Source: Oopsacas minuta (taxonomy: Eukaryota; Animalia; Porifera). From it: a stretch of DNA of 64,000 nt. Made by a program: the position numbers and the translations under genes. The stretch is taken from the NCBI GenBank assembly GCA_024704765.1, contig JAKMXF010000188.1:1-64000 (forward strand), read 5' to 3'. Below are positions 11,390 to 26,012 of this stretch, one piece after another (the first letter of the stretch is position 1; the number at the start of each line of letters is the position of its first letter). The notes under the pieces were generated by a model. That model did no database searches, had not been told where the DNA came from, and saw only the letters and a list, made by a program, of their open reading frames with translations.

Positions 11390-12643
11390 ATGTTTAAAAT
11401 TGAAAAGTTAAAATACATCTATAAGAGATTAGACGTTGACAACTACAAGTATAGATGGGATCAGGATGGTGAGTTGATTGTTTCCTCTGAGCTTCTCACT
11501 TCCAATTGCGAAACGTTAGACATAGGAGAGCTCCTTCCTCGTGCTAGGAGCGGACACAAGGCATTCTTCTACGCTGGAGCTTTTTACATATACGGTGGTT
11601 ACAAGAAAGGAGAGGATAACACACTAAAGGATGCATGGAGGTACTATCCACTCATGCACCATTGGGAGAAAGTAGAGCCTGGTACGGAAATTCCATCTGA
11701 GAATCTGTCTTGTGCTTCAACCCAGGTCAGAGATAAGTTATATCAGTTTGGGGGATCAGGAGCTACTTTCGGATACACAAATTCTTGTAAACTTTACGAG
11801 GTAGATCTTGAATCTCTATCTTTTACCCTAATTAAGCTAGCCAGTGAAGTGTCTATCTGTCCAACTCCTGGTTACGGACACAGCCTAACGTATTCAGGAG
11901 AGAACAAATGTCTCTATTTATGTTGTGGAACTGATGGTCGTGCCTATGAGAAAAGAATCTTTAAATTCAGTCTTTCAGAGAACGAATGGAGTGTTATGAA
12001 TCCTGATAAACAGTGTGTTACCCCTCGCTACAGACAAGAGTCATTTGTATGGAGAGAAGGCTGGTATATAATGGGAGGTGGGATGGTCTTCAAAAGTTTC
12101 GATATGACATGTATGCACAGGTTCTGTTTCAATTCTGAAAAATGGGAGATTATGCCTATACTACCCGACACCACACACGGATATCCAGCAGAGCGTCGTG
12201 GATTTGCCTCTATACTCTACAGAAATAGACTTTATATCATCGGAGGCTCTCTTATCAATCCAGAATCAAATGAATTCCATTTAGTGATAGATGAAGGGCT
12301 ATGGTACATAGATCTTGAATGGATGACATGGCGAATTGTCAAAGGATGTAAGCTTCCTACGCCGGTTGACTTTTTTGCTGCTGCAGTTGAGGATAACGGT
12401 AAGATAATAATACACGGAGGGAGGGACGATCTTGCCAAGAACGTTAGGACACCTGAAACCTTCATACTCTGGGTTGATGTACCTCCACTTGTAGAACTGT
12501 GTTGGGAGAAGATTAAGATCTGGGAGAAAGAGAAATTCCTAACTCTTCCTCTGTCTCAACTGATGGCATTTGGATTACCAAGGACTATAGCTATGAAAGT
12601 ATCTCAGTTTGCTGAGTCTTGTAAGGAAAAGCAACGTTGCTGA
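11390..12643 (+). CDS. KLHDC10: Kelch-domain protein 10-like (CRL2 substrate-receptor type), single exon
   Basis: Kelch repeats (PRARSGH..YIYGGY, YQFGGSGATFG, PTPGYGH, PRYRQE, GYPAERRGF, LPTPVDFFAAAV) and a C-terminal VPPLVELCW box. Confidence 0.85.
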   Translation: MFKIEKLKYIYKRLDVDNYKYRWDQDGELIVSSELLTSNCETLDIGELLPRARSGHKAFFYAGAFYIYGGYKKGEDNTLKDAWRYYPLMHHWEKVEPGTEIPSENLSCASTQVRDKLYQFGGSGATFGYTNSCKLYEVDLESLSFTLIKLASEVSICPTPGYGHSLTYSGENKCLYLCCGTDGRAYEKRIFKFSLSENEWSVMNPDKQCVTPRYRQESFVWREGWYIMGGGMVFKSFDMTCMHRFCFNSEKWEIMPILPDTTHGYPAERRGFASILYRNRLYIIGGSLINPESNEFHLVIDEGLWYIDLEWMTWRIVKGCKLPTPVDFFAAAVEDNGKIIIHGGRDDLAKNVRTPETFILWVDVPPLVELCWEKIKIWEKEKFLTLPLSQLMAFGLPRTIAMKVSQFAESCKEKQRC

Positions 12644-13816: not shown

Positions 13817-14317
13817 ATGGGAAATATTCCAGCTACCCAATTCTCTGATGAAGAGATTAAGCGTCTGAAGCGTAAGTTCAAGAAACTAGACCTGGATAAG
13901 AACGGAGCTATTTCAGCAAAGGAGTTCATGGCTATCCCAGAGCTGAAGAACAATCCTATCGTGCCACGTGTCATTGAACTATTCGACAAAGATGGGAATG
14001 GGGAAGTTGACTTCAACGAGTTCATACAGGGGATATCTCAGTTCAGCATGCAAGGAGATAGTGAAAGCAAGCTAAGGTTTGCATTTAACATATACGATAT
14101 TGATAGAGATAACTACATCAGTAATGGAGAACTGTTCTTAGTCCTAAAGATGATGGTGGGTAACAATCTGAAGGATGCTCAGCTCCAGCAGATAGTGGAT
14201 AAGACTATTTTATTCGCTGATAAAGATAAAGATGGTAAGATATCTTATGAGGAATTCCTGGAGGTTGTTAGGCCGATTGAGATTGAAGTGGCTGAGAAGA
14301 TGTCAGTTCAAGTATAG
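13817..14317 (+). CDS. PPP3R1: Calcineurin subunit B (four EF-hands), single exon
   Basis: MGN start (myristoylation-type), [75 protein letters not shown]. Confidence 0.97.
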
Positions 14318-14509: not shown

Positions 14510-16824
14510 CAGTGTTTCTCAAAGTGGGCCGTAGAGCCCCCTGGGGGGCGCTGAAGGGTTGTAGGGGGGTGGCCACGCAGCAAGGGGCGCTGTGGGTTAT
14601 AGAAAGCGAAACAGAGATACGACCTCAGGTCAAAAAAGTGGTATCATATTCCTCATTATTCATTAACAATAGGTGCTAGCAAATACTTCAATTATCAAAG
14701 CCATTTACAGTGGTAATACTCTTGGTGATTATTAACAACAGCTAATCCTTAAAAATGAATGAAGAATTCTTTTGTTATAATGTCTATGGCTTTCCTAATC
14801 GAAATATAATTATCATTGTTCTTCAAACAAATGTAAACTTCGTAATAGTTAGTAATCTGTTTAATTTCAATATAAATACATACGTAGAAATCTAAACCGA
14901 AAGGAATTGATAAACTCGATCGAAGAAATGAATAGTAAAAAGAAGTGTAGACAGTATAGTGCTGATTATATCAAATACGGATTTGTTAAATCTCCTTCCA
15001 ATGAACAACTCCCAATGTGTTTGTTGTGCGAACAAGTATTTTCTAATGAGGGAATGAAGCCGGCAAGAATGATTGATCATCTGAAATCGCGCCACAGTGA
15101 TAAGGTAGAGAAAGATGTGCAATTCTTCATTAAAATGAGAGACAGCCGAAAAACAATGGGCGGAATATTTGGAAAAATAGATAGACAAAACATTGATGGT
15201 TTGGTTGCCTCCTATAACATTTCGTTACTAATTGCAAAATCTGGTAAGCCACATACAATGGGTGAAAACTTCATTTTACCTGCAATCCAGGAAGCAGTTA
15301 CAACTGTTATGCATTCAGATGGGCGAAGTGTGATTAAGTCCATTCCGTTAAGCAATGATACTGTGGCTAGGAGAATAAATTTAATGGCTAGTGATGTTGA
15401 GAAAACACTATACAGTATACTTAAAACAACGGAATTTTCTCTTCAAATTGACGAATCCACATTGCCAGGTAACGAAGCACTGCTCCTTGCATATGTCCGA
15501 TATATTCTCGAAGGAATAATGGTTGAAGAAATGTTGTTTGCTAGACCACTAGTAACTGACACAAAAGGTGAATCTATCTACAAAGTCGTGGAAAATTTCT
15601 TTCAGGAAAAGGAAATTCCCATGAATAATATCATTGCTTGTGCAACAGATGGGGCGCCAGCTATGGTTGGTAGGCATCGTGGTTTCATTTCGTACTTGAA
15701 AAATGCTGTGCCTGAGGTTTTCGCTATTCACTGCATCGTCCATCGAGAACATTTGGTAGCAAAACATCTAAGTGGTCGCTTGCACAACTCATTGCATATC
15801 GTCATTACTGTTATTAATAAAATCAAAGCTTCCGCAGTCAAGGAAAGAATATTTCGCCAAATATGTCACAAAAACGAAACTGAATTTGAACGTCTGCTTT
15901 GCACACAGAAGTGAGGTGGCTCTCAAAAGGAAAGTGTCTCAGTCGGTTCTACAGTCTTTTCGACACGATTTTAGAATTTTTAGAGGAAGAGAATCCGCAG
16001 TTGATGCAGCTTGTCAGTGCAGCGAAATCAGATGTAGCTTACTTGACTGACATTTTTGATAAGTTCAACGCAATGAACTTGCAACTACAAGGCAATTTAG
16101 TCACTCTGGTCAAGTGTAAAACTGTTGTCAGCTCCTGCATAGGGAAACTAACGTTATTTAAACAAAATATCGGTCGACGAGAATTTTACCAGTTCCCTCA
16201 CCTAGCAGGACTCCAAATTTCAGATGACGATTTGCTAGCATATTGTGAACATCTTGAAGTACTGAAAGCGGATATGATCAAGCGATTCACTGACTTGTTG
16301 GAACTTGAACCGCCTCATTGGCTAATTGACCCTTTCTGTGTGGCTGCCCCAACAGTTCCACTCTATTTGCAGGAAGAGTTGATGGACTTGCAAAGTGATT
16401 GCGAGGAAAAAGCTCATTTTACAATGATGGGGTATGAAAGATTTTGGATTGCAATCGCAGGACGAAATAAATTTCCCAATTTGTGGAAAGTAGCAAAACT
16501 GCTAGTTCTGGCGTTTCCGACATCATATCTCGTTGAGAGAGGTTTTAGTGCAGTCGTTCAATTACTAACGAAGCAAAGAAACAGACTCGATATTTCTCAA
16601 TGCGGAGATTTGAGATTGCTGCTCACTGATATGAAACCAGATATAAATGGGATTATCGACGAACATCACGCTCAAGTACACCCTTCTCATTAATTGATAA
16701 ATAGTACTTATTATCATTAACAAATACGAGTGTAGTAAAAAGATTTAGACTTTCTGGAGGGGGGCGGTATCGAGGGAATATTGTTGACAAGGGGCGCTGC
16801 CCGAAAAAAGTTTGAGAAACACCG
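14510..16824 (+). mobile_element. Full-length hAT transposon, Buster/Charlie subfamily
   Basis: TIRs cagtgtttctcaaa / tttgagaaacaccg; 8-bp TSD gtctagag at 14502-14509 and 16825-16832; internal transposase. Confidence 0.96.
14928..16693 (+). pseudogene. Buster-type transposase interrupted by a single-base frameshift
   Basis: BED-finger-like CLLC..HLKSRH, LQIDES, ATDGAPAM, HCIVH, HTEVRWLS and SYLVERGFS. The frame break at ~15897-15900 reads ctgctttgcac, one T short of L-L-L-H. Confidence 0.92.
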
Positions 16825-18123: not shown

Positions 18124-21100
18124 ATGGTTAATATCCTCAGGTATTTCCTTCTCTTCGCTCTCTTCTTGCTGCCTTTAGAGATATCTGGCGATTACCTGAT
18201 ATACCCAGGCTCTCTAACCCTCCTCAACTTAACATGTGATCCTAATAGCACCCCCAGTAATAATCTTTCAGGTACTCCTTGTCTGGTAACAGCTGGGGAT
18301 ACAGTACAGCTGTCTGTGAGTATTACTGCTGCTCATGTCAGGAATATGAGTAGTGAGGGCTTTCGAGCGCATCCTTTACTCATTTCCTGCTTACAACGTT
18401 TCTCCTCAAAGCTCTCTGCTATGCCACAAATCTTACAATTCTACCTTTCCCAGCAAGAGGCTCTAGCTCTACCAACTAATGACTCTGCTATTAACACAGA
18501 GCTATTAGATTATCATAGAGCAGGTCTAGCTGTATCTTTCAGCTTTAAGAATGTATCTTTTAATACTTTGTTACAAAATACTGTTACAAGCTGTGTTGAT
18601 AAATTCGCAGCTGAACAGTTCACCGTAGGATTGATACAACTAAGCGATGATACATTGGATCTACAGCTACGTACAGGTTTTAAATTCTATCCTGGAGGTA
18701 TTAATGATACTTACTTCAGTTTAGTAGACAACAGTCTGATACCGGCTACTCTCCCTAATTGCCCTAGTAACGCATTTCTTATTAACTCTACTTACCCAGT
18801 TAGTAACTCCAGACCTGAGCAGGTGGTGGGACAGGTGTATCAACCTGTCAACAGGAGTTCTGAGCAGTTCTTGAATCTACTACAGTATCCTGATACTAAG
18901 GTCATGTTCTCAGGCTGTCCTAACATCATAACTGGTTATTCTATACAACAACGTTGTGCTACTCGTGTCATGTCGTTTAGATTGTATCGTACCTTCAAAG
19001 TACTGGCTGGTTTGCTTGGAAATCTACGTAGCGGTTTGTCTGTTGTACGAAGCTGGTCAACTGATCCTTTCAACATCACAAACCCTCTCTGCTACTCATC
19101 TCCCCTCAACACTAGTTTATTCTCAGAGGGTAGAGCTTTGGTTATGAGAGCTTTAGAGGGTTTCTCTATGGATTATCTGGCTCTTCTATCGCAGTGTGCA
19201 GGATTTGACTATGTGTATTATGGATGTGACTATGTGTTGGTAGCTGTACGTAACCAGAGGAGTACTCCACCTCTTACTGTAGTATTCCCTGAGTCTGTGC
19301 TTCTACCTGTGACTCTGTATGGAGCAGCTATATCACTCTACCCCCTGTCTCCCTCTATCTCTGAGTATTCTCCTCTCTTCGACTCTGACGGGATTAGAGA
19401 CAAGATGCTATCCAAATTTTATACTGTTAATCAACTAGCTGGTCCTGACAGATATTTCAGGATACACCCTGTACTAGTACAGTGTATACAGCTGGTAACA
19501 GAGAGTCTGACTGCTTATCTTTCTTCCTACTCCATCCGTATTCAGCAAGCTTACTCCAGGAGTCTATCTTCTCAGCTAGAAGACTATACTACAGGGTTAG
19601 CTGTCAAATTGTCTATATACCCTACAGGTAAATTTAATAATTTATATATTACTAGATTAGGCTACTAATAGGGTCACCTGATCAGGAAATAGTATCATAC
19701 AAAATACAGTAAAGTCTCGTTAATCCGTACACCAGGGGACTACGAAAATTCGTACTCCTTATCCGGAGTTACTTCTTAACCCTGTTCGTATTAACGAGAC
19801 TCTACTGTAGTATCAAATAGCTCCAGTTAATTGGCTATACCTTATTTTGCCAAAAAGTAGTGTTTTATACTGAGATTATATATACTAGCGCGCTTCGCTT
19901 GCTAAGTCGCTGCGAGACAGCTTTGTGTCTCAGATTTAGCTTAATTATGAAACAGCTAAATTTCTTAGTGCTGGAATGCTGGAGTTGCTACGTAGCCTTT
20001 GGTTAGTAATCTGGGCACTTTGTGCTTCGAGTATTTTGAAATTCTCAAAATTTGGATTTTTGTACAGTCATGATGACGATATAATCCCATGATGAGTTGG
20101 CGGTTGTCAAAGTCATGACGTCATGATATTTGGAATATTGAGGGGGATATGCAGGGGGGTCCAATGCTGTGATCAATTTTAATCACTTATTTCGTAATTT
20201 TGGTTATTCCAATATGCCAAATTTTCATTTCCTCATATACTATTTTACTTACCAATTATCCCTCACGTAGACTACCCACTCCTCAACTTTACCCTGCTAA
20301 CTATACGTAGCTGTGCTCTATACGTATCTCAGCAGCACAATACACTCAGAAGATTACATCTAGGCCTTCTCCCTAACAATTCTCTCTATCTTGCTATTGC
20401 TACAGAATTCACTGCTTGGAGCCAGATCGAATTCTTATCTCCTTATAACTCTACTTTCTACGGCTGGGCTAATACCCGCTATAATGCAGCTCTCAGTGGT
20501 ACTCTAGTTAATCCGGCTAATAAGACTGTTAGCTGTGCTAACACTATACTCTCCTCTCCTCCTAGCCCTGACTATGTCTCTCCTTACACCCTCCCTAGTG
20601 TTATAACATATCTCACAAGTGTACAGCCTAACAATTGTGTCTCTCAGAGTGATACTGAATTCTGCAGTGAGAGTCAGTCTTTCAGGGATAATGCTATAGC
20701 AGAGCTGCTAGTGGTTTGTTATATATTTATAAATTACGAGCCGCTTCGCTTGCGAGCACTCTGTGTTCGCATGGAACTCTCCACTTCACACCTCGAATTC
20801 AGCAAAATATATAATTGCGAAATAGAATTGATAATTTAATCTTTTGAACTAATTGTTTACTTTATATCCATAAAAGTATGTATTTACATACGTATGAGAA
20901 ACTTTAATTTGCGAAATTCGGATTCAGCGTACTCTTTACCCCTATAGATATAAGTCTGTTGAGCAAGTCTCCAAGTATAATTCGAGATTTCAACTATTTG
21001 TTTACTTGTAGTATACTCATAAAACCAACAAATATATTTACCTATAAATTCGGATTCAGCACAAATTCAATATGTTTACTCAAGATTTATAGAATTCTGT

Positions 21101-23978
21101 TTACTTTCTTGATAAATGTATAGTTATGCGACTTTTCAGAATTAAGAACTCTGATTCAATATCGCATTCCATAAATCCTGTCCTTGACAACGAACAAACA
21201 GACGAACAGACAGACAACAATAGCAAGTTATTAATTTAGATCAAGTTTCTCAAACTCTCATGAGGCCACTTTATTAACATTTATCTCATGACCACATCTA
21301 GGTCGACATGTTTGGTCAAGTTTGGTCACGTTGGTCTAGTTATCGGTCCAAAGGGGGAGGGGCTTCGCCCTGGGACAAATTCATATAATTTTTTTATTAT
21401 GCATACATATAATTGGTAATACAAGTACGTAAGTATACAGGATGACTGGTATAATCCCATTACAAACAAGGAAAGGAATATAAAGAAATTATAAATTATT
21501 TTGTAAGTATCTTGTGTCTTATAAACATAAATTAGTCAGAGAACCAAAATGTCTTTACCATCATTATACTACTTTATATTTGACAAATTGTCAAAGTTTC
21601 CTTTATCAACATTCTTATTTTGAACTGCCAGAAACATAATAAATGTATTGATTTCTCTTCGGCAAGATAGCAGAGTTTTGTTTTTGCCTTGGAGTTTTAG
21701 CTTGAGATCTGATAATATATTTTAAAATGTCGTACAATTAAATAATTTCTCCTCGATTTTCTTGTAATTTGTCAGATAAATCGTCGTGATGACTCAATGA
21801 TTGCATCAAAAAGTGAGGTAAATCTTGTGAGACAATGTGTTTGGACAGCCACCTAGCCTCTGTGTGTAAATTAAGAGTCGATATTTCATCATCGTTCTCT
21901 TTGCATAATAAATAATCTGTCGCTCTCGTGAGGCGTAACGTTTAATAGTGTTGACACATTCAATAATGGTAGCTAATAATTCTTAAAATTAGTTAGAGAG
22001 CTCCTTCGCTTCCAAATGTTGTCGATGTGTCATACAATGTATGTTCAAAATTTCATAACCAACTTCATTCCTAAGTGATGATATATATCCCTTTTTACAT
22101 CCAATCATTGCTCTGGCGCAATCAGTTGAACATGCACAAATATTAGATAAGGGATTTTGCACCTATCGAAGAATGATGTCAGTGTTGAAAGAATCGATTG
22201 TGCTGTTGTATCAATGGTAAAATCTCACTGAACAGCAATCATTATGAGTATATCTAACAAACATAATAGCATTGCTTCATTGTCAATGGTAGTTAATTCA
22301 TCAAGTGCAACCGGATATCTAATATATTTATCAATTGATTCAAGACATCTTCACCCATTTCACCTTTTCGTCTCTGTATAGTAGAATTTGATAATGGTGT
22401 TGAATACGAAATATAAAAGCTTCATTTTGTGTACAAAATTTGATTTCAATAGATGGCTTTTAAGAGGCGATTATATGAAGCATGTCCCAACCTTGTCCAA
22501 AGTGTTTATACATTTATAGCAATTACCATTTGGAATTGGGAAAATTTAAAAATTAACACAGTTCAGTCAATATACATGTTATACATGTCATACATGCTAT
22601 ACATGCTATACATGCTATACATGCTATACATGCTATACATGTTATACATGTTATACATGTTTACATGTTATACATGTTATACATGTTATACATGTTTACA
22701 TGTTATACATGTTATACATGTTATACAGGTTGGAAATTAAAATAATAGGAATTATATGCCACGAAACCGAACCTAATATTCTTTCTGAAATTTTAATGAA
22801 GGTCGCGACCGAAGAGTTCAATATTCCGAATTTTTTGGCGAATACGAAGTTGATGCTAACCCATTATCAATGCAGTATTCGGTATTCGTTTGAGATAACC
22901 GAATAGGTATTACCTACAATATTAGTGGGATTGTGGGAATTTGAAAGATCATGAGATTTATAATTTATAATTTATAAACATTAGTGTGACACACGATAGG
23001 ATCGTGAAAGTTTAGAGCCCTGCAGTATCAGTATCAGCTTTTGGTAAGGAATCAATTCACGAATACTAATACATATTCGATTCGAGCGATTTCAATCTTT
23101 TATTTTTAAAATTTAAGCCACTTATCTAGATTCTGCTAGAATATCAATTCTCAAAGCACATAGTGCCGAGAGTATCAATCCAAGCACGTTAGTATGAAAT
23201 ATTTATTTATAACTGTATGTAGATAATGAGACGTAAGCACTGGCTGGTTTCCTCTGCAGATCTAGTTAATACTCTAACTCAATGCTTCGGTTTGTGTGCT
23301 ACCTGTATGGAGGGAGATGTGTGGTATCAGAAGTTAGCTTATTGTGATAATCTAGTACACTGGGTTCCATTCAGACTGATCTCAGAAGCTGACAACATGC
23401 ATTTCTACGTGATGGAGAATATGACAGTAAAGGAGTATGCTTGTAGCGGATCTAGACTCTGTATTGCTAAGTCCCCAATATACGCTGTCCTGGCATACAC
23501 TGTAGAGACCTTATTCAGACCAGATCCTGCCAAATCCCAGGAACTATCTCTCTATTCCATGGCAGATAACCCTATCCCCGTCTACACATTGCTAGACACT
23601 ATCTACGCTCTGTATGGAGCTGGGAACATTACTGTTTGGGTGACTAATGAGAATGATCTGTTAGTATTGAAGCCAGTTCTACGTGTTTTAATGCTAGATA
23701 ATGTCCTGGTGACGTGTGTAGATATCAGATTGTTTGATTCGAGCAGGCTGACAGCTGTACAGAGACAGTTAGACGGTAACATACACGAATGGACAACTAA
23801 TGGCTGTCCTACTTACAGTCGTGATGTAATTGCTCCATATACAATTAGTATAGTTGATATAAGTCAGCGTGCTAGGAGGGATGTACACCAAATCGTGGTG
23901 GAGCATAACTATGGAGATTATCTAACTACCAGATGGAAGAGTGCTGACAGGAGATGGATTGAGAAGCAAATTCTATAA
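18124..23978 (+). CDS. Secreted ~900-aa protein: signal peptide, M15-like, Hedge (Hedgehog-N), M15-like, Cys-rich C-terminus. Exons 18124-19627, 20271-20713, 23223-23978
   Basis: Signal peptide MVNILRYFLLFALFLLPLEISG. Hedge-like segment VNRSSEQF..RVMS..LSVVRSW..LFSEGRAL..AGFDYVYY. GT-AG junctions with matching phases (1, then 0) give 2703 nt without stops. Exon 2 is not in the ORF track. Confidence 0.8.
19707..19807. mobile_element. pogo/Tigger-like MITE in intron 1
   Basis: TA-flanked; TIRs cagtaaagtctcgttaatccgtac / gttcgtattaacgagactctactg. Confidence 0.88.
19970..20130. repeat. Dispersed repeat shared with ~43050-43200
   Basis: tagtaatctgggcactttgt..cgagtatt.tgaaattctcaaaa..gtcatgatgacg..ataatcccatgatgag occurs at both places. 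Confidence 0.8.
20736..21241 (+). mobile_element. Apparently complete Helitron/Helentron-like (HINE/DINE-style) non-autonomous element
   Basis: 5' acgagccgcttcgcttgc, core aaattcggattcagcgta..ttacccc, and 3' ccttgacaacgaac-(acag)n-..ttaatttagat. The 3' half recurs at ~59226-59453. Class assignment is by resemblance only. Confidence 0.55.
21480..22340 (-). mobile_element. Decayed Buster-type hAT transposase relic in intron 2
   Basis: The minus strand reads YPVALDELTTIDNEAMLL and LCKENDDEISTLNLHTEARWLSK, parallel to the IDESTLPGNEALLL and HTEVRWLSK motifs of the element at 14510. Many stops. Confidence 0.75.
22571..22727. repeat. 9-bp minisatellite (TATACATGT/C) x ~17
   Basis: Directly visible tandem array, including two 8-bp variants. 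Confidence 0.97.
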
Positions 23979-24809: not shown

Positions 24810-26012
24810 ATGTGTTCTCGACCTGTTAAAATCCCCAAACTGGACTCCGATGTGTTAGACCAAATGCCCTCTCTCGAAGAAAAGGGCCCCGCTATCGAAT
24901 TTGACCCCTTCCCGGTACCAACCTCATCCAAGAGCCCTGGCAGCCCTGCTCACAGCTCACAAGTCTCCAATCCTGAATCTTCCTCAGACATCACACTAGT
25001 GCTAGAAATACCCGGGATATCTTCTCAGATTAACAACACTATCAAGCTGCAGACTATCATTGACTCGCTAGACGAAGCTATGGAGGATGAGCTAGACAGA
25101 GTTCAGAAGAGATTCTACAGACAGAAGCGGCCTTATTTTGACGAGCGGAGACTTGTGCTAGAGCAGATTCCTTTCTTCTGGCGTACAACTCTACTCAGAC
25201 ATCCGGAGCTATACTCTATCATGGAGGAACTAGATGTACAGATACTGGATCATTTGTATAGTATAGATATTCTAGAATATTCTGATGGAGACTGTGCATA
25301 TAAGATATCTTTCTTCTTCAAAGAGAATCCTTTCTTCTCTAATGAAGAGTTCACAAAGGAAGTACGAATGATAGATTCTGAAGAATTGGTTTCAATTGGA
25401 ACTAAAATAAAATGGAAGAAACCTTATATTTCTCTCAATCGTAGACTAAAACCGGGCGACAAGCGCTCACCCGATGATCCCCGCTGTGAATTCTTCCACT
25501 GGTTCTCCAGTTCTAATTCTAAATACCTTGATAGAATAGGAGAGATATTGAGAGATGATATCTGGCCTAATCCTATCAAGTATTTCCTACCACACAGTGG
25601 TTCTACTGAAGAACTGGTGGTACTGACTGATAGTGATTCAGATAGTGACACAGATCAAATACCTCTCGAAGACATGAATAGGGTAAATTCCGACGTCATA
25701 AGTATTGACGATGATGATGATGAAGATTGTGACGTCATCTCTCCTACTCAAGACCTGATAACCTCTAGTTTAATTAACGGGGACGTGTCCTCCTCTCCAC
25801 CTCACAACTCCGTAACACTCAATAACAGTGCACAAACAGTATACTCCCCTATTTCACATGATTTTATAGATAGAACTTCTTTAACACCAACTCTACCACC
25901 TGTCAGTGAGTTGAGAGAATCTACAGATACTAATGCACATGTAAACTCACCTCCAACAAGCACAGACCAAACTAATCTGGTATTAGAAGTTCAACAGGAG
26001 AGTGAGGCTTAA
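24810..26012 (+). CDS. SET/TSPY-like nucleosome assembly protein (NAP family), single exon
   Basis: RPYFDERRLVLEQIPFFWRTTLLRHP, YKISFFFKENPFFSNEEFTKE, TKIKWK, FFHWF, IGEILRDDIWPNPIKYF, followed by an acidic Ser/Thr-rich tail. Confidence 0.9.
   Translation: MCSRPVKIPKLDSDVLDQMPSLEEKGPAIEFDPFPVPTSSKSPGSPAHSSQVSNPESSSDITLVLEIPGISSQINNTIKLQTIIDSLDEAMEDELDRVQKRFYRQKRPYFDERRLVLEQIPFFWRTTLLRHPELYSIMEELDVQILDHLYSIDILEYSDGDCAYKISFFFKENPFFSNEEFTKEVRMIDSEELVSIGTKIKWKKPYISLNRRLKPGDKRSPDDPRCEFFHWFSSSNSKYLDRIGEILRDDIWPNPIKYFLPHSGSTEELVVLTDSDSDSDTDQIPLEDMNRVNSDVISIDDDDDEDCDVISPTQDLITSSLINGDVSSSPPHNSVTLNNSAQTVYSPISHDFIDRTSLTPTLPPVSELRESTDTNAHVNSPPTSTDQTNLVLEVQQESEA

Follow-up and report, generated by a model that had tools for sequence, protein, structure and literature searches.

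A predicted secreted protein of the glass sponge Oopsacas minuta with a Hedge domain between two M15-like pseudo-peptidase domains, from an apparently undescribed holozoan family

The window analysed here, a stretch of 64,000 nucleotides from the glass sponge Oopsacas minuta (contig JAKMXF010000188.1, positions 1 to 64,000, forward strand), carries at 18124-23978 (+) a gene of three exons and 900 codons, the predicted product of which holds a Hedge (Hedgehog N-terminal signalling) domain between two domains resembling M15 peptidases. From the N-terminus the protein would comprise a signal peptide, a first LAS domain of M15/MepK-like type (d1), the Hedge domain (d2), a third, M15-like domain that duplicates d1 (d3), a linker, a cysteine-rich C-terminal domain, a dibasic site and a short tail. 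This architecture and the placement of the gene in the family described below are very probably correct. All profile searches and structure predictions were made exon by exon, and the genome searched comprised 61,460,524 bases in 365 contigs.

Exon 1 (18124..19627, +) is an open reading frame (ORF) with an ATG start, containing 501 codons and the first base of a split codon and ending at the donor G/GT (the slash marks the exon edge); it codes for the signal peptide, for d1 and the Hedge domain, and for the beginning of d3. Intron 1 (19628..20270, +, phase 1, GT...AG) interrupts d3. Exon 2 (20271..20713, +), entered through the acceptor AG/, completes the split codon, adds 147 further codons and ends in phase 0 at the donor /GT, encoding the remainder of d3 up to about 20420 and then a cysteine-containing linker. 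Intron 2 (20714..23222, +, phase 0, GT...AG) leads to the terminal exon 3 (23223..23978, +; acceptor TAG/ATA), with 251 codons and the stop codon TAA at 23976-23978, so that the model sums to 501 + 1 + 147 + 251 = 900 codons.

Three other glass-sponge assemblies (L003-L005) keep all four splice sites and both phases; in them the three exons occur in the same order and on the same strand, with identities to the window gene of 58-66% for exon 1, 64-66% for exon 2 and 75-78% for exon 3, and with an identical position of the exon 3 stop. Seven exon-1 homologues, sharing 46-66% identity, all terminate at the same exon boundary. The introns vary from 71 to 647 bases (intron 1) and from 222 to 2513 bases (intron 2) across assemblies, the ranges in L003-L005 alone being 71-592 and 222-766. 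Searches with exon 1, the Hedge profile and the C-terminal profile found the gene in a single copy in its own genome. These patterns of conservation argue that the three exons form one gene for a 900-residue protein, as the earlier note, made from the letters of the window, had proposed when joining them. An artefact, whether through exons that derive from different genes or through a pseudogene at this locus, is very improbable: frames, splice sites, phases and stop are kept in four species despite unconserved introns; single proteins in many phyla contain all the parts in colinear order, and some of these proteins lie on contigs of about 3 kb, a transcript-like size; and the second codon of exon 3 in L003, at the place where a start codon would lie, is TTC and not ATG, so that exon 3 is no separate gene in that assembly. 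An artefact would fit the L002 locus, where neither exon 2 nor exon 3 was detected within 8 kb downstream of the homologue, which may have long introns or be a truncated paralogue. This homologue (L002:8001-9632, P0007) is the most divergent in glass sponges, with 46% identity, and the gene caller gives it an N-terminal extension of 40 residues.

A signal peptide is predicted at about residues 1-22 (18124..18189, +), with a putative cleavage position; the highest 19-residue hydropathy of the protein falls at residues 2-26, and the N-terminus is conserved in homologues. The hydropathy scan gave no hydrophobic segment beyond the signal peptide, and the sequence scan counted 17 NxS/T sequons and 23 cysteines with no transmembrane segment, consistent with a secreted glycoprotein. 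A Pfam scan of all exons gave no match to Hint, VWA or cadherin domains, and Pfam found no EGF, FN3 or other known matrix-type domain in the protein. Genes for a Kelch-repeat protein and a nucleosome assembly protein (NAP) bound the locus, leaving no space for cadherin-type exons. Lacking Hint, VWA and cadherin domains and a transmembrane helix, the predicted protein is neither a hedgehog nor a hedgling, a negative diagnosis already made in the earlier note. Elsewhere in the genome there are at least nine loci with Hint/Hog domains, several in tandem and with ORFs of about 1000-1230 residues, on contigs C33 (457-466 kb and 609 kb), C133 (337-341 kb), C88, C45 and C186 (L007-L014); none of them is near the Hedge gene.

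The middle domain (d2; 18811..19224, +) is assigned as a true Hedge domain, in which the metal sites have been lost, from Pfam and profile matches to hedgehogs. The Pfam model PF01085 (HH_signal) matched residues 232-367 at E 4.6e-4 with 20.4 bits, just under its 22.1-bit cut-off, and in the six-frame genome search it reached 22.5 bits at 18811-19224, above the cut-off. It matched seven of the eight glass-sponge members (best E 3.5e-6), and orthologues reach 77 bits. Against the PDB, a profile of the eight glass-sponge sequences found fly Hh as well as Ihh, Shh and Dhh, with E between 1.2e-4 and 0.011, its sole non-hedgehog row being NDUB3 at a chance-level E of 1.6, and the family Hedge profile, in which sponge rows are included, found Shh at E 1e-19, with hedgehogs making up all matches up to E 0.01. 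Searched in six frames with PF01085 and the family Hedge profile, the genome gave a match at the d2 locus only, which need not mean that it holds no other Hedge domain.

The landmarks of a Hedge domain are present in d2, namely the RSSE-F start, the EGRA strand and the GFDYVYY motif. In the alignment to mouse Shh, the zinc ligands H141, D148 and H183 fall on F333, V340 and L372, the catalytic E177 on G367 and H181 on Y370, and the acidic calcium-binding loops are also substituted. The replacement of LHYEGRAVD by LFSEGRALV and of HIH by YVL, read by eye in the earlier note as the loss of the zinc ligands of a Hedge domain, is thus exact, and all ligands are replaced. Bilaterian members have the first histidine (LHYEGRA), with the aspartate and the last histidine gone. 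Fly Hh and hedgling likewise lack the full set of zinc and catalytic residues, which are typical of the domain and not strictly defining (PMC6027127).

The first flanking domain, d1, has a LAS/M15-like pseudo-peptidase core at 18361..18735 (+), recognised by an AlphaFold2 model and structure searches within a folded segment at 18193-18759 (about residues 24-212). The model built from the d1 alignment has a mean predicted local distance difference test score (pLDDT) of 66.4, about 80 in the core, and a predicted template modelling score of 0.70. Foldseek against the PDB gave nothing that reached E 1e-3; heading its list, with E no stronger than 0.06, were the endolysins Ply500 and LysECD7, the N-terminal domain of Ihh, MepA, ChiX and Shh/Dhh. 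A VIA search of 48,161 representatives, independent of Foldseek, placed the zinc DD-peptidase of Streptomyces albus first (1lbu; Z 7.7, root-mean-square deviation 4.1, 112 residues), followed by the N-terminal domain of Shh in second and third place (Z 7.0 and 6.5), fly Hh in fifth (6.1) and VldE in sixth (6.0), with VanX (Z 5.0), LysB4, VanXYg, VanYB, Ply500, VanXYc, DacB and the T5 and RB49 peptidases in lower rows; VIA rescoring of Foldseek's own list gave the same picture. In a shape search of the ESM Atlas the 30 nearest models were summarised in seven rows, each of them a Peptidase_M15_3 or M15_2 (MepK-type) cluster, at TM scores of 0.47-0.56 over 122-142 aligned residues.

Each of these scores is middling alone, and the call of a LAS fold for d1 comes from the agreement of the three structure libraries together with profile matches between Hedge and the flanks. 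In hhalign comparisons the family Hedge profile matched d1 at E 1.8e-4 and d3 at E 5e-3, with the helix, the strand and the HxxGxA core aligned in both; the d1 match lends weak support to a DD-peptidase fold of the flanks. With glass-sponge sequences only, d1 against Hedge (E 0.068) and the first part of d3 against Hedge (E 0.033) were not significant. The same holds for d1, d3 and Hedge against a two-sequence alignment of M15_4 (E 0.07-0.17), a comparison of low power, since the known relation of Hedge to M15 is also missed by it. On the modelled structure, then, d1 is placed in the LAS/M15-type (Hedgehog/DD-peptidase) fold, the fold family expected for it at the outset being recovered when the AlphaFold2 model was searched with Foldseek, VIA (with 1lbu on top) and the ESM Atlas.

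The first part of the other flanking domain, d3, lies at the end of exon 1 (19360..19627, +) and aligns with d1 as its duplicate. Within glass sponges, hhalign of d1 against the exon-1 part of d3 (residues 393-501) gave a probability of 93.4% and E 2.5e-7, and at family level, with bilaterians included, d1 and d3 aligned over 123 columns at a probability of 99.0% and E 3.6e-18. The two domains are accordingly duplicates of one another, and the sequence pattern that the earlier note saw repeated in both flanks lies far above chance. In the unsplit proteins of Saccoglossus, Argopecten and Asterias the d1 profile matches at both the d1 and the d3 positions and covers the full core; because it spans the whole d3-equivalent domain there, it follows that sponge d3 runs on into exon 2, which supports the suggestion that intron 1 splits the third domain. 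The direct alignment of the C-terminal half of d1 to exon 2 is colinear but weak (E 0.068), and the exon-2 profile matches bilaterian proteins at about residues 550-710, with E down to 6e-17.

At the zinc-ligand positions the sponge protein has H131, S138 and Q181 in d1 and Y488, K495 and an alanine (residue 41 of exon 2) in d3, the third position being set by alignment to the bilaterian HxH motif. H131 is invariant in all eight glass-sponge sequences. Many bilaterian relatives have HxH in d1, and in d3 they have HxxGxA with Q, E or D. A full H...D...H triad is missing from each of the three LAS domains, the sponge sets being H/S/Q in d1, F/V/L in d2 and Y/K/A in d3. With an incomplete triad and no match to a Pfam M15 model, the flanks are best described as M15-like pseudo-peptidases and not as members of M15; the resemblance to peptidase M15 proposed for them earlier stands at the level of fold and motif, given the structural matches of d1, and fails at the level of Pfam family membership.

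Exon 3 encodes a cysteine-rich C-terminal domain (23223..23867, +), which is the best-conserved piece of the gene. A profile of four exon-3 sequences matched proteins of amphioxus, echinoderms, molluscs, an annelid, Oscarella and a choanoflagellate at their C-termini. The E values were 1e-48 to 5e-60 in bilaterian proteins of 900-970 residues, 7e-37 in Oscarella and 5e-31 in the choanoflagellate, and the 17-sequence alignment of the domain contains seven invariant cysteines. Pfam, PDB profile searches and an ESM Atlas feature search gave no relative of this domain, and the AlphaFold2 model of exon 3 from four sequences (pLDDT 40.9) is too low for use. A fourth LAS domain in exon 3, considered because of a LISE... 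stretch set against the EGRA strand, is unsupported, with an E of only 0.23. A pattern scan placed a candidate furin-type proprotein-convertase site, RARR, at 23868..23879 (+), followed by a tail of 32 residues. Fifteen of the 17 members, ranging from sponge to choanoflagellate, have a dibasic site at the aligned column, mostly as x-K-R-S/A outside the sponge, and the short tail past it shows a W-E-x-x-W pattern. Neither the C-terminal domain nor the dibasic site figured in the earlier description of the gene.

With the exon-1 profile, a full HMMER search covering 1.84 billion representatives yielded 48 proteins with E no weaker than 1e-3, among them 13 at about 1e-30 or better; the 13 proteins P0010-P0022, of 766-970 residues, matched at E 1.6e-46 to 5.1e-29. 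The d1, d2, d3 first-part, exon-2 and exon-3 profiles match consecutive segments of single proteins, including RefSeq or transcript-derived ones of 914-970 residues, and in individual spliced proteins from amphioxus, echinoderms, hemichordates, molluscs, an annelid, Oscarella and a choanoflagellate the parts succeed one another as in the sponge (for example Branchiostoma XP_035662269.1, Asterias XP_033644117.1 and Crassostrea XP_011438131.2). The expectation that similar tandem proteins exist in other invertebrates was thus borne out in several phyla. Members were found in the cephalochordate Branchiostoma floridae, as two paralogues; the echinoderms Asterias and Anneissia; the hemichordates Glandiceps and Saccoglossus; the molluscs Patella, Tegillarca, Potamilus, Sinanodonta, Argopecten, Crassostrea, Saccostrea, Pecten, Haliotis, Batillaria, Solemya and Octopus; the annelid Owenia and the brachiopod Lingula; the homoscleromorph sponge Oscarella pearsei; and the choanoflagellate Craspedida sp. 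UC1. The 30 clusters with names included no Cnidaria, Ctenophora, Placozoa, Demospongiae, Calcarea, Ecdysozoa or Vertebrata, which is no test of their absence from the family. Oyster members also occur on Logan contigs of about 3 kb, which suggests that these contigs are transcripts.

Two members carry the module behind a long N-terminal extension. The protein of Oscarella pearsei (P0024, 2253 residues) has trypsin and PLAT domains upstream of the module (156-388 and 997-1106). The choanoflagellate protein (P0025, 2145 residues) has an added C2 domain and, directly upstream of the module, a Peptidase_M15_4 domain (1078-1166), which matches Pfam at E 3.4e-10, above the cut-off, with the SxHxxGxAxD motif and the third histidine intact. 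P0027, P0030, P0033, P0036 and P0051, from molluscs and unnamed sources, each have two separate stretches matching the glass-sponge Hedge profile, P0036 having three, suggesting lineage-specific duplication of Hedge within the family. The database labels seen for members were 'uncharacterized' or the automatic 'Hedgehog N-terminal signalling domain-containing protein', and no paper was found that names these loci or describes their architecture. Hedgehog, hedgling and Hedge all go unmentioned in the Oopsacas minuta genome paper (PMC10280926).

The sponge d2 is homologous to Hedgehog proteins (Hh, Shh, Ihh, Dhh) over the full Hedge domain. It differs from them in being internal, starting near residue 230 after d1 and not directly past the signal peptide, in the absence from the protein of a Hog/Hint autoprocessing domain and of lipidation sites, and in the replacement of the zinc ligands, the catalytic glutamate and the calcium ligands. 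With hedgling, the Hedge-VWA-cadherin protein of sponges, cnidarians and choanoflagellates, it shares the occurrence in early-branching animals of a Hedge domain without Hog and with an incomplete metal/peptidase motif (PMC6027127), but the sponge gene has no VWA, cadherin or transmembrane helix, places Hedge between LAS domains, and ends at a conserved stop with the NAP gene next to it. An Oscarella carmela expressed sequence tag has been reported in which a Hedge domain is followed by neither Hog nor VWA (Burglin 2008, PMC2362128). The Oscarella pearsei family member likewise has Hedge without Hog or VWA, and the expressed sequence tag is suspected to come from a member of this triple-LAS Hedge family.

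M15/LAS enzymes, including 1lbu, MepK/Peptidase_M15_3, VanX/VanY and the phage L-Ala-D-Glu endolysins, come out best among the structural matches of d1 in the three libraries. They share with d1 the core order of a helix, a strand, an xxxGxAx strand, a helix and a hairpin ending G-x-G-x-[YL] ... [FYH]-x-[DH]. The flanks depart from these enzymes in matching no Pfam M15 model, in the incomplete triads of d1 and d3, and in forming a tandem array in a secreted animal protein. The bacterial 'Hh/DD-peptidase' proteins, which also link Hedge to DD-peptidases, are single metal-complete domains that have been invoked for horizontal transfer into a cnidarian ancestor (Roelink 2018, PMC6027127). In contrast, the family of the sponge gene joins Hedge and M15-like domains in one eukaryotic protein, and does so already in a choanoflagellate.

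The best overall explanation, given a probability of roughly 0.55, is that the gene encodes a secreted array of pseudo-enzymes that acts as a non-catalytic binder. The protein would not be a peptidase; its degenerate LAS clefts would serve as binding grooves, and it may be matured by a furin-type convertase cleaving at RARR. The non-catalytic binding role, taken by itself, is reasonably probable. As to the ligand, peptidoglycan-type peptide or glycan fragments of bacterial walls are the preferred class, a tentative suggestion by analogy, on balance doubtful, which is favoured by the peptidoglycan stem peptides that are the ancestral LAS substrates, by the apparently live M15_4 domain of the choanoflagellate relative and by the precedent of the peptidoglycan recognition proteins (PGRPs). 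The non-catalytic members of the PGRPs derive from amidases that lost catalysis and retained binding.

Several observations weigh against this explanation. The d1 model is middling, with a mean pLDDT of 66 and only one of five models confident, and all VIA Z scores of d1 are below 8, a range in which a match may stem from a common arrangement. No Pfam M15 model matched any of eight d1 and eight d3 first-part sequences at E up to 10, and the family profiles of d1 and d3 matched no PDB sequence. The assignment of d3 to the LAS fold was made through its homology to d1, for a domain that spans an intron. HxxGxAxD is present in d3 of Potamilus and HxH in d1 of many bilaterians, and such partial motifs in relatives mean that residual metal binding or catalysis could persist somewhere in the family. 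Finally, the C-terminal domain, best conserved and without a recognised fold relative, is probably central to function.

The next candidate, which is unlikely, is a component of the extracellular matrix or of adhesion, in which sulfated proteoglycans or other molecules of the matrix would be the ligands of the dead LAS domains. In one published account, the association of Shh with the matrix is reported to depend on the zinc-coordination centre, and proteoglycans are treated as analogues of peptidoglycan (PMC8052667). A matrix role would also suit a protein that by its sequence is secreted, glycosylated and cysteine-rich, and the retention of the family in adults that are not bacterivorous, such as amphioxus, starfish and molluscs. 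Against it, the Cardin-Weintraub heparin-binding stretch and the metal centre through which Shh contacts the matrix are missing from the sponge d2, and no VWA, EGF, cadherin or FN3 domain was found. A signalling ligand whose Hedge domain engages a receptor of the Patched/Dispatched RND type is improbable. The presence of a true Hedge domain would favour it and the conserved dibasic site recalls the maturation of pro-ligands, but the Hog domain is absent, the zinc/calcium surface of the Shh contacts is replaced, and conservation is highest in the C-terminal domain and the flanks and not on the Hedge surface. Because Hedge is internal, it can also carry neither an N-terminal palmitate nor a C-terminal cholesterol. 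The activity of one LAS domain as a metallopeptidase, through a non-canonical set of ligands, is more improbable still: the invariant H131 of d1 in the eight glass-sponge sequences and the HxH (d1) or HxxGxAxD (d3) kept by relatives agree with it, but apart from the choanoflagellate M15_4 no domain of any aligned member has a full triad, and the Hedge domain has lost all three ligands and the catalytic glutamate.

The gene bears on how the Hedgehog signal domain evolved from DD-peptidases. The classes of Hedge-domain protein discussed in the literature consulted are Hedgehog and hedgling, and to these the gene adds a third architecture, in which Hedge is embedded between M15-like domains, extending from a choanoflagellate via sponges to deuterostomes and lophotrochozoans. 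The transition from peptidase to signal thereby becomes open to phylogenetic and structural tests inside one protein family, and a conserved, unnamed C-terminal domain and a processing site are brought to attention. It is conceivable, as a speculative and rather unlikely scenario, that the family preserves the setting in which Hedge arose, an M15 peptidase domain of MepK/VanY type having been tandemly duplicated in a unicellular holozoan, one copy becoming Hedge, and Hedge later being joined to Hog in Hedgehog and to cadherins in hedgling. If so, the Hedgehog signal domain would not require a late bacterial transfer into a cnidarian ancestor, and the family would rank as an ancient third class of Hedge-domain protein that brings in a new C-terminal domain.

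The Kelch-repeat gene upstream (11390-12643, +) and the NAP gene downstream (24810-26012, +) also neighbour the gene in L004 and L005, which indicates synteny across glass sponges. Between the Kelch gene and the Hedge gene lie two further elements. An intronless ORF at 13817-14317 (+) encodes 166 residues with four EF-hands, resembling calmodulin, and is missing from the interval between the Kelch gene and the Hedge gene in the other sponge assemblies. At 14907-16693 (+) there are two overlapping ORFs of 335 and 264 residues, the second of which matches the dimerisation domain of the hAT family at E 3.5e-5; the pair probably represents a hAT transposon in decay and is missing from the syntenic interval of L004 and L005. 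Within intron 2 of the Hedge gene, a simple repeat at about 22560-22740 shows as a reiterated short peptide in the list of ORFs.

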